A stretch of DNA of 64,000 bases, from the NCBI GenBank assembly GCA_025786725.1, contig JAHLTZ010000032.1, forward strand, positions 248,001-312,000, read 5' to 3'. Positions 153 through 18,096 of this stretch are shown in pieces; position 1 is the stretch's first letter; each line of letters begins with the position of its first letter. Below the pieces are notes generated by a model. That model searched no databases. It had not been told where the DNA came from and was given only the letters and a program-made list of their open reading frames with translations. The translations under genes were made by a program, and so were the position numbers. This stretch comes from Syncephalis fuscata S228. Taxonomy: Eukaryota > Fungi > Zoopagomycota.

Positions 153-1961
153 ATGAATCCATCGGCACCAAGAAGTAGTAGTAATCGTGCTCCGTCACGT
201 ACGGTGTTTGGTAGGCAGCAGCGATTAATGGAGAGAATAAATTGCGATCAGTAATCTAACAGCTATAACAGTGGGCAATATTCCTTATGACTTTACGGAA
301 GAGCAGCTAGTGGATATCTTTAAGGAAGTAGGGCCGGTCAAGTCACTTAGGTAATTAGTTTGCGTTCTACATGAGTGGATAGAATGGAAACTAAATAGCA
401 ATATCTAACACTATAATAGACTTATGTTTGACCGTGAAACGGGAAAGCCGCGCGGCTATGGATTCTGTGAGTTTTTTGATGCCGAAACTGCTGGTAGTGC
501 CGTAAGAAATTATAAGCTATTATGGTATCCTTTATTATTAGTGTTGTTACGTAAATACACGTTACAATAGGTATTAAACATAGCTGAGAATTACAGCGGT
601 CTCTCTGGACATGAATGAACAAACGAACAAACGAATGAATAGCCATTGGTATTTATTCTATAGCAATACGTCATAGACGTATCAATGCTATGTAGTCAAT
701 GGAGGCGGCAATCTAAATGATTATCCACCTACCAATTCTTCTTCTTTACTGAGTAATTACGATGTAGGAGGCCGTCCATTACGTGTAGACTTTGCCGATG
801 TTGAAATGACCCGACCCACTGGACAAGATGGACAACAACAACAACAACAGCAGCAGCAGCAGCAGCAACAACCTCCATCTCAATCAGGTTTGCCACCACC
901 ACCATTACCTTCATCTCAAATGGCACCATCTTCAATGGCTCAGTCAGGTCCTGGCTCTTTAGGTCAACGTGGACCACCACCAAATACAAGAGATTATCGA
1001 CCTTATGACGAGGTATACATATTAATGAATCATTTGTCATTTATAGCTTACAAGTGATAATACCCATAGCGACCACGACATGCCGGTCTACCCGATGATA
1101 GTATGGGCCATCCAGGTGGACAGTCCTCACAGCCACCGACACCCAATGTACCATCTACTGAACTTATTGCCAAAGCATTGGCTAATTTAAATCAGTCGCA
1201 ATTACTAGAAGTTATACGGCAATTAAAGGCAAGTATATTTTTTTAGTTGCTTACTATACAATTAACTATAACAATCTGTATATCATATTAGGCTCTGGCT
1301 GTAACACATCCTCACCAAGTACGTACTCTACTACAGCAAAATCCACAGCTATCCTACGCTGTGCTAGATTGTCTAGTCAAGTTGGGGCTAGTAGATACAA
1401 TGGCTATTCAAGTAAGTTATACCAATACAATAATAGCTATGCAGTTGAATCTAAATAATGCCATTTATTCTACTATAATACATAGAGAGCCCAAGGTGGA
1501 CAGATGACTGGACATGCTATGGGTGGACTTGCTCAGCCAGCAGCACAGCCACCACCACCACCACCAACATCACTTCAATCGGCCTATGATTTAGTTAATA
1601 CGCTTAATCTTTCTATGCCACCACCACCACCAACAGGAGGAGGAGTGTCACCCAATCAACTACCACCGCCACCACCACCTAATGTAGCTGCACTAGGTAA
1701 GTAATTATATTACAACAACAATCAATTGATTATATATATGTATATGTATGTCCAGGCGGTGCAGTGGATCCATTACAGCAACAAGCAGCCTTGCTTCAAT
1801 TGTTCAGTCTAACTCCTCAACAAATTGATCAATTGCCACCAGCTGAACGAGCCATTATATTGCAACTGGTAAGTATCGACTATTACGCTATTATAACAAA
1901 CGTTACTGACTAGTTGAACCGATGATAATAGCGTAGCCAATTGGGCGCTGGTTCAGTATAA
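153..1961 (+). CDS. RNA15: Cleavage stimulation factor 64 kDa subunit (CstF-64/Rna15), multi-exon
   Basis: Hand-spliced [80 protein letters not shown]; hinge [11 protein letters not shown]; C-terminal [21 protein letters not shown]. Needs an AT-AC intron 512-749 and a GC-AG intron at 1229. Confidence 0.93.
512..749 (+). other. AT-AC intron (ATAAGC...TTTAC) in the CstF-64 RRM
   Basis: Removal joins AAT T|TG AGT AAT TAC to give [12 protein letters not shown] with no indel relative to the family consensus. Confidence 0.75.
834..870 (+). repeat. CAA/CAG polyglutamine tract in CstF-64
   Basis: caacaacaacaacaacagcagcagcagcagcaacaa in frame. Confidence 0.9.
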
Positions 1962-2086: not shown

Positions 2087-2868
2087 TTAACGTGCTTGGC
2101 CATACTGAACATTACCGCGCTGTTGGCGTTTTTCCATTTTTTGTTGTCGTTTACTCTTGGATGCTTCTTGATCTCCTCCTTTGTTGCCATTACCGCCAAA
2201 GCCTAACATAGGGGCTACAAATCCCCAGATACTATAGAAGGCATAACATGGAATCTACAGATGGTAGACGGTTAGTGTGTTGTTATTGTATCTCCAGACC
2301 AGTGGCACTTACCACTAGATAGAACCACCAAACAGACGACCAAGCTAGACTGCCTAGATGCACGAACCAAGTGACATATAGAATATCAAACATATAACTA
2401 GACCAGTGCCCATTCAAATGTCCAAATTAATCCAAAATGGATAAGAGTAGCCATCAAGTACTTACGATGTAAGACCGGGTGCATTTAGATCGTCACCGCC
2501 CGAAACAATAGCGCCAGACATATCCCGTTGTGGCTGGGCCATACTTGCAAATTGGCGATAGATAAAAAGTGTAGGCAGCCAGGTGAGCAAATAGCGGATA
2601 ACGCGATAAAATGTCACATCGGCATTGTACCAGCCAAATTGAACAACGATATACGTTATCTAATAAAAGTTTACCATACAATAAACAATGATCAGCGCAC
2701 TTGGACTTTATGATTTGTATAATACTAATTACATTAACGATTAGCATGCCCCATTGGACGTTACGTAGAATACGTGCGTTTTCAATTGCTGTTTTCTTGG
2801 CTGATTTGTTTGCCTAAAGAAAAGTGCGTTAGAATCGGTATGAAGCAAAGTAGCAAGCTATTTACCAT
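2087..2868 (-). CDS. SND2: SRP-independent targeting protein Snd2/TMEM208 (DUF788)
   Basis: ATG-only first exon, then ANKSAKKTAIEN; GGDDLNAPGLTS, YMFDILYVTW, WFYL-IPCYAFY; Lys/Gln-rich tail SKRQQKMEKR. Confidence 0.88.
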
Positions 2869-3937
2869 GTTGGGTGTCACAAAAAGGAAAGAGATGAGTT
2901 GCGATAATTAATTTACAAATTATAACAGCTACTTTTACGTATTAATTATGGTAACAACACAACATTTTACGTTTATTAATTAAAATCAATAAAATTTCTG
3001 TAAATACGCTATTACTGCTGCATGTATATCTATGTTGTAAATCGTGCAATAATAACCTGCCATCTATACTGCCCAACAAGTGGCATCAAGCCATTCGGTA
3101 TCAAGCTACTTGGCTGTAATGATCAGCTTGTAGACTAGCACGTTGCTTATTTCCATTTTAATAAGAGCAATTTCGCTTAAACTTAACGTAGAGTGCACGT
3201 TACGCAAACGACCAAGTGGTATGTGCGCTGTAGGACGTCAGAAATTAAGCCGGTGATTTGCTGCTTTACATAAAATCACTGAGAAGGACCCTTTTGCCTA
3301 TAGCGAAGAACGGCTGGTTTAAGCAACATGGCTCAATATGGCTCGGCAATAGTGTCTAGCCTTTGCGCAACTAGGTGTTACGAAGCCATAATAGCAGACG
3401 GGCGATGATCCGCGACAAGCATCGTTCCATAAAGGTCAGATTAAGCAATATTTGACCTAGTCGGGATAGTAGTACACGTGCCACTTAAAAAGCAAAGCCA
3501 CGTCCAGCAACATACGCCACAATACAGTGCTGATTATTAGCGTTTAGTACATTGTATTTAGTGTATAATTTACTACTAAATATCTATTATATTACAGTAT
3601 ATTCTATCATTTGTTTATTTATTATCTATTTGCTATAATGAACCCAAATTAACGTGGCGGTGTTGCTATTTAATCAACGGAGTTTTAACACTAAGCATGG
3701 CTGCAGTTCCGCTCGAGTTACCTAAAAAGGATGAGCATTGTTCGTTGTAACTTTAGCGTTACTCGATAATGACTGCTATTCAGCTATATATATACTCTGC
3801 CAATTGTACTGCATTTCTTTGCTTCCATAGCTACTCTTGTATCTAGTTCTTATTCTATTCTGTTCTATTCTACTAGCACGACGACAACTATCACTGCCAT
3901 TATTTTATTACTTTTACTACTATCACTTCTTATCACC

Positions 3938-4701
3938 ATGTCTACGGATCGCGTCGCGCTTATTGAAAAGGCCGCACAGGCTCAAACATACGGCCGCTAC
4001 GAGGAAATGTTTGAATCGATCGTCAAGGCTATTCGAATTGATAAGAATGTCAATCTTGAAGAAATGAAGCTGCTCTCGTTTGCCTATAAAACCGTAATTG
4101 CCCTCCGTCGTGCTCGTTGGCGCATGCTTAACATGAGTGAAGAGCGTGTATCGGCCGAGGGCGATAATCTACGGATTGAGCAAGTTAAACAAGATCGCAG
4201 CCAAGTCCGGGATGAACTATTAAAGATTTGTCAAGAATTTGATAGTATATTCGGCGAGAATCTTATTCGTGATGTCCAGCCTGCTGAATGTCATTTGCTA
4301 TATTATAAAATGTACGTATTATTGCTACTTGATTTATTAGCACCATAACTAATCGATTTTATAGGAAAGGCAACTACTACCGGTTTATGACTGAGTTTTC
4401 ACTTGGACCCACATGTCAAGAAAGTGTAGCTGCGGCCGAAATTGCCTACGTGCATGCAACCGAAATTGCTCGGTCCAAGTTTGAGCCAGTCCATTCACTT
4501 CGTCTTCATGTAGCATTAAACCATGCAACATTCCGCTACGAGATTTGCAATGACACAGAACATGCCTACGAGATTGCCCAAAAAGCAGTCGACGAAGCAG
4601 ATGCCATGATCAATGATCTATCTGAGAAAACCTACCACGATAGCATTTTTATGCTAAAACTATTGAAAGACCAATTAAGCGTTTGGGATGCTAATTTCTA
4701 A
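3938..4701 (+). CDS. Divergent 14-3-3 family protein (one intron ~4312-4363)
   Basis: LLSFAYK..I..RR..WR, YYKMKGNYYRF, LRL.VALN..F.YEI, TYHDSIFMLKLLKDQLSVW align to the 14-3-3 helices. Confidence 0.9.
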
Positions 4702-17496: not shown

Positions 17497-18096
17497 ATGC
17501 CGCCACAACGCCGCTCTCGCGTACACAAAAATAACAAGGCCATTAAGAAGGCACATCGTACGCGTAGACGAACGAAAGATATCCTTTTGAAAGCAGTGCT
17601 ATTAAATGAATGAATATGCGTAAATAATAGTCTTAACTACTAACAAAATACATTTGGACCAGATTCATGACGATCTTTTGCCAGAAAATGTTGAAAAGCT
17701 AAAGAACCAGCCATTGGATGCTGACTTGCCGGGCTTAGGTCAACACTACTGCGTTGAATGCAGGTAAGAGAAATGGCAATGTGCTAAATAGAGCGCTGTT
17801 TAACAATATGCATCACCGGCAATTGATAGTCGTTACTTCGTCTCTACCAGTGCTATGGAAGTGCACGTAAAGAGTAAGGCACATAAGAAGCGGTATGTAG
17901 CATATTAAGCAATGTTAAATGTAAACAAGCTACTAATAACTCTACTGGTAGACTACGCGAACTCAAAGATGAGCCGTATACACTAGCAGAAGCCGAGGCG
18001 GCCGTTGGATTGACGACTGAAAATCGACGTCCCACAACAACGGTAACCGCATCTACGACCACCAGCATAAGCAAAACTGCCATGGCTATGGATTAA
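17497..18096 (+). CDS. BUD20: Pre-60S zinc-finger factor Bud20/ZNF593
   Basis: [16 protein letters not shown]...[17 protein letters not shown]...[27 protein letters not shown]; first intron is U12 AT-AC. Confidence 0.94.
17579..17651 (+). other. U12-type (minor) AT-AC intron in BUD20
   Basis: Donor ATATCCTTTT, branch-like GTCTTAAC at 17630-17637, acceptor AC; removal gives [10 protein letters not shown]. Confidence 0.93.

Follow-up and report, generated by a model that had tools for sequence, protein, structure and literature searches.

A conserved AT-AC intron in the CstF-64/Rna15 gene of Syncephalis fuscata and a fold that may hold its 5' splice site and a branch-like adenosine

Few AT-AC introns fall outside the U12 class, and their recognition is poorly understood. 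Examples removed by the major spliceosome were reportedly found in sodium-channel genes, by Wu and Krainer in 1997 and by Dietrich, Incorvaia and Padgett in 1997. At the 5' splice site, U6atac (AAAGGA then GAGA, facing AUA then UCCUUU) and U6 (ACA then GAGA) each have a defined register, an AGC placed five nucleotides from GAGA (GAGA-N5-AGC) being the catalytic-triad spacing in these two small nuclear RNAs (snRNAs), and the branch point is presented by U12 or U2 as an adenosine bulged from a helix. Regarding genes with unusual intronic elements, the yeast RPL30 and RPS14B transcripts are said to fold around their own 5' splice sites, su(f)/CstF-77 reportedly harbors an intronic poly(A) site, and U11-48K and U11/U12-65K are said to carry a U11-binding enhancer. 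The general scheme of pairing between snRNAs and splice sites is that given in PMC3584512. The present analysis concerns a stretch of 64,000 nucleotides (nt) from Syncephalis fuscata S228 (contig JAHLTZ010000032.1, positions 248,001 to 312,000 of the forward strand), hereafter the window, in which the ortholog of CstF-64/Rna15 contains an AT-AC intron of 238 nt. The position of this intron is kept in an essential gene of 3'-end processing from early fungi to amoebozoan-like organisms.

The junction, the age of the intron, two helices and one motif can be established from comparison of orthologous DNA, and on balance this comparison favors an ancient spliceosomal AT-AC intron with a fold that would hold the bases of its 5' splice site together with a branch-like adenosine. 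A previous sequence-only reading of the same DNA had described the intron and its competing donor sites; the first helix (P1), the GAGA-N5-AGC motif and the hairpin with a bulged adenosine are new.

The AT-AC junction

The gene and its intron have the following features, numbered as in the window.
153-1961, + strand: CstF-64/Rna15 ortholog, nine exons, with a frame open through all joins (model of 374 amino acids)
153-210, 272-350, 420-511, 750-1012, 1070-1228, 1292-1411, 1486-1696, 1756-1868 and 1932-1961, + strand: exons of this gene
512-749, + strand: AT-AC intron, 238 nt, ATAAGC...TTTAC, in phase 1 within a Leu codon after Arg-Asn (spacing RN-L-x6-GR)
734-753, + strand: pyrimidine-rich tail, the 3' AC (748-749) and the adjacent AG (752-753); ACTGAG is kept in S. 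pseudoplumigaleata

Exon 3 ends with ...AGA AAT T at 511, and the intron lies where helix alpha-2 of the RNA recognition motif (RRM) ends. Joining 511 to 750 (511^750, ATAAGC to TTTAC) keeps the frame, and the canonical RN-L-x6-GR is obtained from this join alone. The join 524^754 (GTATCCTTT to AG) is also in frame and reads RN-YKLLC-NYDVGG, three residues longer, the frame is lost with 501^754 (GTAAGA to AG), and a stop codon is encountered when the GTATCC donor is joined to the AC acceptor. The sequence-only reading had placed GTAAGA at 502-507, ATAAGC at 512, the TTTAC end at 749, GTATCCTTT at 525-533 and the AG at 752-753, where all of them are indeed found, and its description of the U12-like donor, with a stop on joining to the AC and three additional residues on joining to the AG at 753, likewise stands.

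Independent information on the junction comes from genes that lack the intron. A metagenome scan returned 80 loci, one of which (L057, with the sequence of locus L008) has the intron, and provided about 70 intron-less controls; in these and in dozens of database proteins, all those read keep RN-L-x6-GR. In Syncephalis plumigaleata (L097), which is intron-less at this site, the DNA reads GTTAGAAATT followed directly by TGAGTAATTACGATGT, with AGAAATT immediately before the latter, and is base for base the 511^750 join. Because introns are commonly lost through recombination with reverse-transcribed spliced mRNA (PMC3584512), this DNA can be regarded as a natural record of the splice junction. 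Where the intron is present, it splits the Leu codon as T/TG in S. fuscata, C/TG in S. pseudoplumigaleata and C/TT in Basidiobolus, and the annotated Basidiobolus meristosporus protein is built on the equivalent AT-AC junction. The loss in S. plumigaleata, the spacing in the orthologs and the B. meristosporus protein thus all support the earlier proposal that 511^750 is the productive junction, and the AT-AC reading of it appears nearly certain.

Two gene models from relatives can be mentioned here. In S. pseudoplumigaleata, the model P0024 (locus L004) passes from '...ETA.SA' straight to the hinge and loses the fourth RRM strand; the fetched DNA has the AT-AC intron exactly at this gap, where predictors could not place it. 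The model P0088 of Basidiobolus ranarum makes the same jump with the same loss, presumably from the same cause. The skipped exon in both proteins would therefore be an annotation error explained by the AT-AC intron.

The identity of the gene as CstF-64/Rna15 is confirmed exon by exon, since single-exon queries of Pfam find RRM_1, CSTF2_hinge and CSTF_C, and exon 3 matches the structures of the human CstF-64 RRM (1p1t, E 2e-10) and of the yeast Rna15 RRM (2x1f). The succession of N-terminal RRM, hinge and C-terminal domain, as seen in these exon-level matches, is that of the family. Searches were made with each exon separately, and the joined model of 374 amino acids was translated in scripts only. 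The remaining seven introns measure 61, 69, 57, 63, 74, 59 and 63 nt as listed (range 57-75 nt), which agrees with the earlier remark that the 238-nt intron is much the longest; six are GT-AG and one is GC-AG, and their donors include GTAAGT (three times), GCAAGT and GTAGGC. The GC-AG intron has one feature line of its own.
1229-1291, + strand: GC-AG intron (GCAAGT...TTAG) in the CSTF2_hinge region, the sole join that preserves the hinge frame

A conserved fold inside the intron

The fold was compared in seven introns representing six lineages, the two Syncephalis sequences being close; the others are from Basidiobolus, from a harpellid-like contig (L005) and from three probably amoebozoan contigs (L006, L007 and L011). 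Its elements in S. fuscata are as follows.
515-520, + strand: 5' strand of P1, intron positions +4 to +9 (AGCTAT), pairing with 580-585
580-585, + strand: 3' strand of P1 (ATAGCT), directly 5' of GAGA
586-597, + strand: GAGA-N5-AGC motif (GAGA ATTAC AGC), right after P1
598-625, + strand: conserved block GGTCTCTCTGGACATGAATGAAC..., whose arrangement of purines and pyrimidines is like that of the U6atac stem-loop region
701-733, + strand: hairpin P3, GGAGGCGG / loop CAATCTAAATGATTAT / CCACCT(A731)CC, the bulged A lying 18 nt before the 3' AC

P1 keeps a constant register in the seven introns despite helix sequences as different as AATCAAT, GGTCAAACAAA, TACTCATT, TGCCAC and TGCAT. The six bases in front of GAGA are the best possible pairing anchor in all seven (combined Fisher p = 4e-9), 41 of 42 cells are paired as against 12-26 of 56 in a control with slid partners (script count), and compensatory changes can be found in all six columns, with two to four pair types each. 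In every one of the seven introns P1 is adjoined by GAGA and, five or six nucleotides on, AGC; this motif would arise by chance in 0.1-2% of shuffled introns. In the alignment of the seven, AGC is followed by a conserved block, first of pyrimidines and then of purines; the stretch 598-625 is near-identical in S. pseudoplumigaleata and is still recognizable in the harpellid and in Basidiobolus. According to both a pattern scan and a profile built from the seven elements, there is a single copy of the element in the 29-Mb genome, and the element is thus specific to this gene and is no repeat; a repeat or mobile element was rejected on the ground of this unique pattern. With the profile, the genome gave the element's own copy and three weak matches (E at least 2.2), and no match was obtained in GT-AG or intron-less orthologs. 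The sequence-only reading had called the intron unusual, and a conserved internal structure gives this view a firmer footing.

The second helix is a hairpin of the form GG-AG.../...CU(A)CC, present in all seven introns, with its bulged A ahead of the 3' AC by 11, 14, 18, 22 or 27 nt. Over its first eight pairs, 54 of 56 cells are paired, pairs 1-4 being invariant and pairs 5-8 covarying. In S. fuscata the hairpin loop contains AATCTAAAT (at about 716), a branch-site-like word which also occurs in CstF-64 intron 6, where it is the likely branch site.

Two further observations concern the surroundings of these helices. In the seven introns, pairing is possible between the pyrimidine run after AGC, which is CUCUCU or CCUUY, and the hairpin's GGAG strand (598-612 with 701-705 in the window). 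Such a pairing is a possible alternative to the bulged-A helix and hence a candidate switch; because the run and the GGAG strand are both invariant, covariation cannot test it. GU-rich tracts (GTGTTGTT, TTTGTGTTTGGTTTTT, GTTTGTCTTTGTTTG) were noticed by eye at 540-553, at about 3560-3585 of L005 and at about 1895-1912 of L098; they sit inside the P1 loop and may be likened to the kind of sequence bound by CstF-64 RRMs.

With regards to similarity with the snRNAs themselves, the 28 nt after AGC were compared with the genome's U6atac in an alignment anchored on AGC. The comparison is significant in six of the seven introns (z = 3.3-5.6), the similarity ranking in the top 0.007-0.6% of 13,778 genomic 28-mers, and the S. 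fuscata block itself has z = 3.3 (top 0.4%); the same anchored comparison with U6 is not significant. Pairing like that of helix I, in which N5-AGC would bind the nucleotides ahead of the hairpin, is marginal (p = 0.045) and is not claimed. A hairpin directly after AGC is present in three of six folds (Basidiobolus, L007 and L011) and not in Syncephalis or the harpellid. The likeness to U6atac and U6 is accordingly claimed as one of design only, and neither homology nor membership is proposed.

Intron class, distribution and age

Regarding the class of the intron, no RTATCCTT stands at +1: the intron opens with ATAAGC, and its sole RTATCCTT is displaced to 525. While a U12-type branch site would be expected as TCCTTRAY, some 10-15 nt ahead of the 3' splice site and without a pyrimidine tract, the 3' region CCACCTACCAATTCTTCTTCTTTAC contains no TCCTTAAC-like word 10-15 nt from the 3' end and does have a pyrimidine tract. 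ATAAGC corresponds to the local GTAAGT-like donor with A for G. The AT-AC orthologs start with ATAAAT, ATAGGT, ATATAC, ATATGC, ATACGT or ATATGT, and all those read begin with AUA and have, as major-type donors do, a purine at +5 followed by a pyrimidine at +6. Because neither of the two features that define the U12 type is found, the intron is likened, by exclusion, to the rare major-type AT-AC introns, which it resembles.

The genome nevertheless has elements of a minor spliceosome, and the window includes U12-type introns. By Rfam models, U11 (47.5 bits) and U6atac (37.8 bits) score above the cut-off, a full-length U12-like match with a GUAAGGA branch-site box scores below it (34.6 bits), and U4atac was not found in the genome by its Rfam model. 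The U6atac candidate (L002:1501-1660, that is G000:C315:4451-4610; 37.8 bits) has GGC in place of the Rfam AGC triad (GAGAUAGUUGGCGA), whereas the CstF-64 intron element has AGC.
525-533, + strand: U12-type donor-like motif GTATCCTTT, 13 nt inside the AT-AC intron, a candidate donor
17579-17651, + strand, and about 39699-39630, - strand: textbook U12-type AT-AC introns of about 70 nt each, with donors ATATCCTTT

As branch words, the two textbook introns carry TCTTAAC and GTTAAC/CCTAAC, which precede the AC by about 10-14 nt, and they illustrate the genuine minor class of this genome; TCTTAAC lies 14 nt from the AC in the window's BUD20 intron.

Among the signals pointed out previously, the internal U12-type donor does not find support: it is kept in S. 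pseudoplumigaleata as ATATCCTTT, 15 nt downstream, which is the sole other full copy among the orthologs, and it is absent from Basidiobolus and L007. Since it is kept in the sister species alone, this motif cannot be the core of a conserved mechanism. RTATCCTT is not rare in the window (6 observed on both strands against 5.1 expected), and the chance of finding it on the + strand of this 238-nt stretch is about 1%. Weaker relics of the motif can be seen in L011 (ATCCTT), in L006 and in the hairpin loop of L007 (TTCCTTAC), and none in Basidiobolus; they may have been left by a U12-type ancestor or may act as helpers in single lineages. GTAAGA at 502, earlier taken for a competing donor, finds no support in that role: it encodes Val-Arg, and in Basidiobolus, the harpellid and S. 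plumigaleata the corresponding letters are GTTAGA or ATTAGA.

In this gene, introns in phase 1 after 'RN' are widespread, as was first seen in read-through fragments of open reading frames and then confirmed on fetched DNA. AT-AC orthologs were found in nine further fetched loci with eight distinct sequences (L009 duplicates L008); the carriers are the two Syncephalis, Basidiobolus, the harpellid-like L005 and the metagenome contigs L006, L007, L011, L008 and L010. In S. pseudoplumigaleata (L004) the intron is kept, with the same ends, in the syntenic CstF-64 gene; two other fungal contigs have GT-AG introns at the same site, and the intron is absent in Piptocephalis and S. plumigaleata. By cluster names and word search, L006 and L007 have the amoebozoans Planoprotostelium and Soliformovum as their closest named relatives, and a protein atlas was uninformative on the taxon of L006, L007 and L011. 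These three are probably amoebozoan contigs and, because of the closest named relatives of the first two, the intron is probably older than the split between fungi and amoebozoans. The sequence of L005 is interrupted by runs of N.

Several observations on individual loci can be added. The AT-AC orthologs L008:2622-2752 (ATACGT...) and L010:165-315 (ATATGT...) are GC-richer, have GTATC at +5 and show a short helix on the bases of the 5' splice site without GAGA...AGC; L010 also has a hairpin, ATCAC-CTAC-GTGAT, with CTAC in its loop. L007:1-1197 is metatranscriptome-like. It comprises a 5' leader and the complete CstF-64 frame as well as AATAAA and a poly(A) tail (A13), and its sole interruption is the AT-AC intron of 181 nt. 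It is thus an intron-retaining polyadenylated RNA, and this retention gives a single hint that removal is inefficient. CstF-64, TMEM208 and 14-3-3 stand in the same order in the window (about 2100-4700) and in S. pseudoplumigaleata (L004), and the order CstF-64 to TMEM208 is kept also in S. plumigaleata (L097) and Piptocephalis (L099).

Explanations and comparison with known systems

The fold would act as follows. P1 pairs intron positions +4 to +9 with the six bases just before GAGA-N5-AGC, so that P1 and the hairpin together hold the region of the 5' splice site as well as the branch-like adenosine in cis helices, in the geometry normally adopted with U6atac/U6 and U12/U2. Acting in cis on the removal of this single intron, the fold would gate or pre-organize the use of its splice sites, and the yield of productive CstF-64 mRNA would depend on it. 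In unspliced CstF-64 RNA, a stop is reached 20 codons inside the intron. The conserved internal structure argues for a special control of splicing.

Several points weigh against this explanation. The full architecture is limited to seven introns of six lineages, the AT-AC orthologs L008 and L010 have no recognizable GAGA...AGC, and the S. fuscata hairpin itself carries one C.A mismatch. Because S. plumigaleata and Piptocephalis have lost the intron, its function must be dispensable in some relatives. Rfam searches, with E values up to 10, find no U6atac or U6 match in 400-900 of the window or in L006, L007, L008, L010 and L011 (the intron region gives one chance match in S. fuscata and chance matches only in the orthologous loci), simple local alignments with the U6, U6atac, U11 and U12 of the genome are not significant, with one isolated exception in L008, and the seven-element profile gives the true U6atac 1.9 bits (E = 3.3). 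A plain mask over the splice site accounts for the helices as well, although it leaves the invariant GAGA and AGC unexplained, because masking needs complementarity only. Guidance in cis would cover both the helices and GAGA/AGC and is without precedent.

In its strongest form, guidance in cis leads to a self-guided intron, in which GAGA-N5-AGC and the GGAG strand replace the guide functions of U6atac/U6 and U12/U2, so that little or no pairing with snRNAs in trans would be needed, or the intron would be partly self-catalytic in the manner of group II. The register is exactly that of U6atac/U6, with the complement of +4 to +9 abutting GAGA and AGC following after 5-6 nt; positions +7 to +9 and the branch-like word vary freely by lineage and their partners co-vary; and the order of 5' splice site, GAGA, AGC, bulged-A hairpin and AC is said to parallel that of group II introns. 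The hairpin adjoining AGC in Basidiobolus, L007 and L011 and the resemblance of the block after AGC to U6atac point in the same direction. However, neither Rfam nor the profile detects homology to U6atac, the helix-I partner (p = 0.045) is not convincing, Syncephalis and the harpellid have no hairpin after AGC, positions +4 to +6 still resemble a major-type donor, and such an intron has no precedent, which leaves the self-guided intron unlikely, be it with replaced snRNA guidance or with partial self-catalysis. An intron with its own guide strands, forming a module that has co-evolved with its splice sites since before the split between fungi and amoebozoans, is a similarly doubtful proposition. 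If true, it would be a living design intermediate between group II introns and snRNA-dependent ones, or the first snRNA function supplied by a substrate.

Slightly less probable again is the proposal of the sequence-only reading, a deliberately weak intron with competing donors at 502 (major), 512 (AT) and 525 (U12-type), through which the output of CstF-64 would be tied to the spliceosome or to 3'-end processing, possibly with cleavage and polyadenylation inside the intron. S. pseudoplumigaleata preserves the U12-type motif with a change of G to A, and in both species it is in frame with the matching type of acceptor, GT-AG here and AT-AC there; yet the two in-frame coincidences together have a chance of about 1 in 9, the motif is missing from Basidiobolus, the harpellid and L007, and neither acceptor has a U12-type branch site at a distance of 10-15 nt. 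The presence in the genome of U11 and U6atac above the Rfam cut-off and of a U12-like match below it, the GU-rich tracts seen by eye in the P1 loop of zoopagomycete introns and the retention of the orthologous intron in the polyadenylated contig L007 all speak for this proposal, and the lack of conservation of GTAAGA speaks against it.

It is still harder to believe that the intron hosts a stable non-coding RNA and that the link with CstF-64 splicing is incidental. Long introns in compact genomes are said often to harbor small RNAs, and a deeply conserved internal element, with P1 closing its 5' end and a hairpin near its 3' end, would be in keeping with such a host role. However, there is no match to an Rfam family, no snoRNA box is seen by eye (nor is a hammerhead core), P1 is made of the splice-site bases themselves, and the element is tied to one gene and one position from fungi to amoebozoan-like contigs and is lost with the intron. 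Finally, a productive GT-AG junction at 524^754, with the AT-AC reading as an artefact of protein alignment, is very improbable: while GTATCCTTT is a perfect minor-type donor with an in-frame join that gene predictors would choose, YKLLC would replace L-S in a loop of constant length in about 70 orthologs, the intron-less S. plumigaleata DNA reads as the 511^750 join, and in Basidiobolus, the harpellid, L006 and L007 the frame is restored by AT-AC ends and by no GT-AG pair.

The favored reading, an AT-AC intron whose fold would hold its own splice-site bases and branch-like adenosine, offers a system that can be mutated to ask whether intronic RNA structure can define, gate or replace pairing with snRNAs, and the same system is suited to asking whether the dosage of CstF-64 is set at one intron.

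In comparison with known systems, the CstF-64 intron shares its AT-AC ends with the U12-type AT-AC introns, and its host lineages Basidiobolus and Amoebozoa are rich in minor introns (PMC10639083). Relics of minor-type signals are also present in its vicinity (GTATCCTTT in S. fuscata, ATATCCTTT in S. pseudoplumigaleata, ATCCTT in L011 and TTCCTTAC in the L007 loop), but the intron has neither RTATCCTT at +1 nor a TCCTTAAC-like branch word. It resembles the U2-type AT-AC introns of sodium-channel genes, with which it has in common AT-AC ends in an otherwise major-type donor (ATAAGC against GTAAGT) and a 3' end preceded by a pyrimidine tract and, farther off, a CTAAA-like word. No conserved internal fold is known in those introns, whereas in the CstF-64 intron +4 to +9 are paired in cis beside GAGA-N5-AGC and a bulged-A hairpin is found from fungi to amoebozoan-like contigs.

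As in the spliceosome's catalytic core, a complement of +4 to +9 is followed by GAGA and, 5-6 nt on, by AGC, and a helix bulges out a branch-like A that has two pairs 3' of it; the difference is that both partner strands are intronic in CstF-64 and do not belong to an snRNA. Regarding group II introns, the order of GA-rich linker, AGC, hairpin with an A bulged from its 3' strand and AY end recalls J2/3, D5 and D6. Unlike them, the CstF-64 intron starts with AUA and not with GUGYG, has no domain 1 and no domain-5 hairpin consistently in all taxa, places its bulged A 11-27 nt from the end and not 7-8, and is an intron of 180-240 nt in a nuclear protein-coding gene. With RPL30/RPS14B, su(f) and U11-48K/65K it shares an unusual conserved intronic element near a splice site in the gene of an RNA-processing factor, as well as an unproductive RNA on failure of splicing. 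What sets it apart from these self-regulating introns is that its element resembles an snRNA core and not the usual RNA target of a protein.

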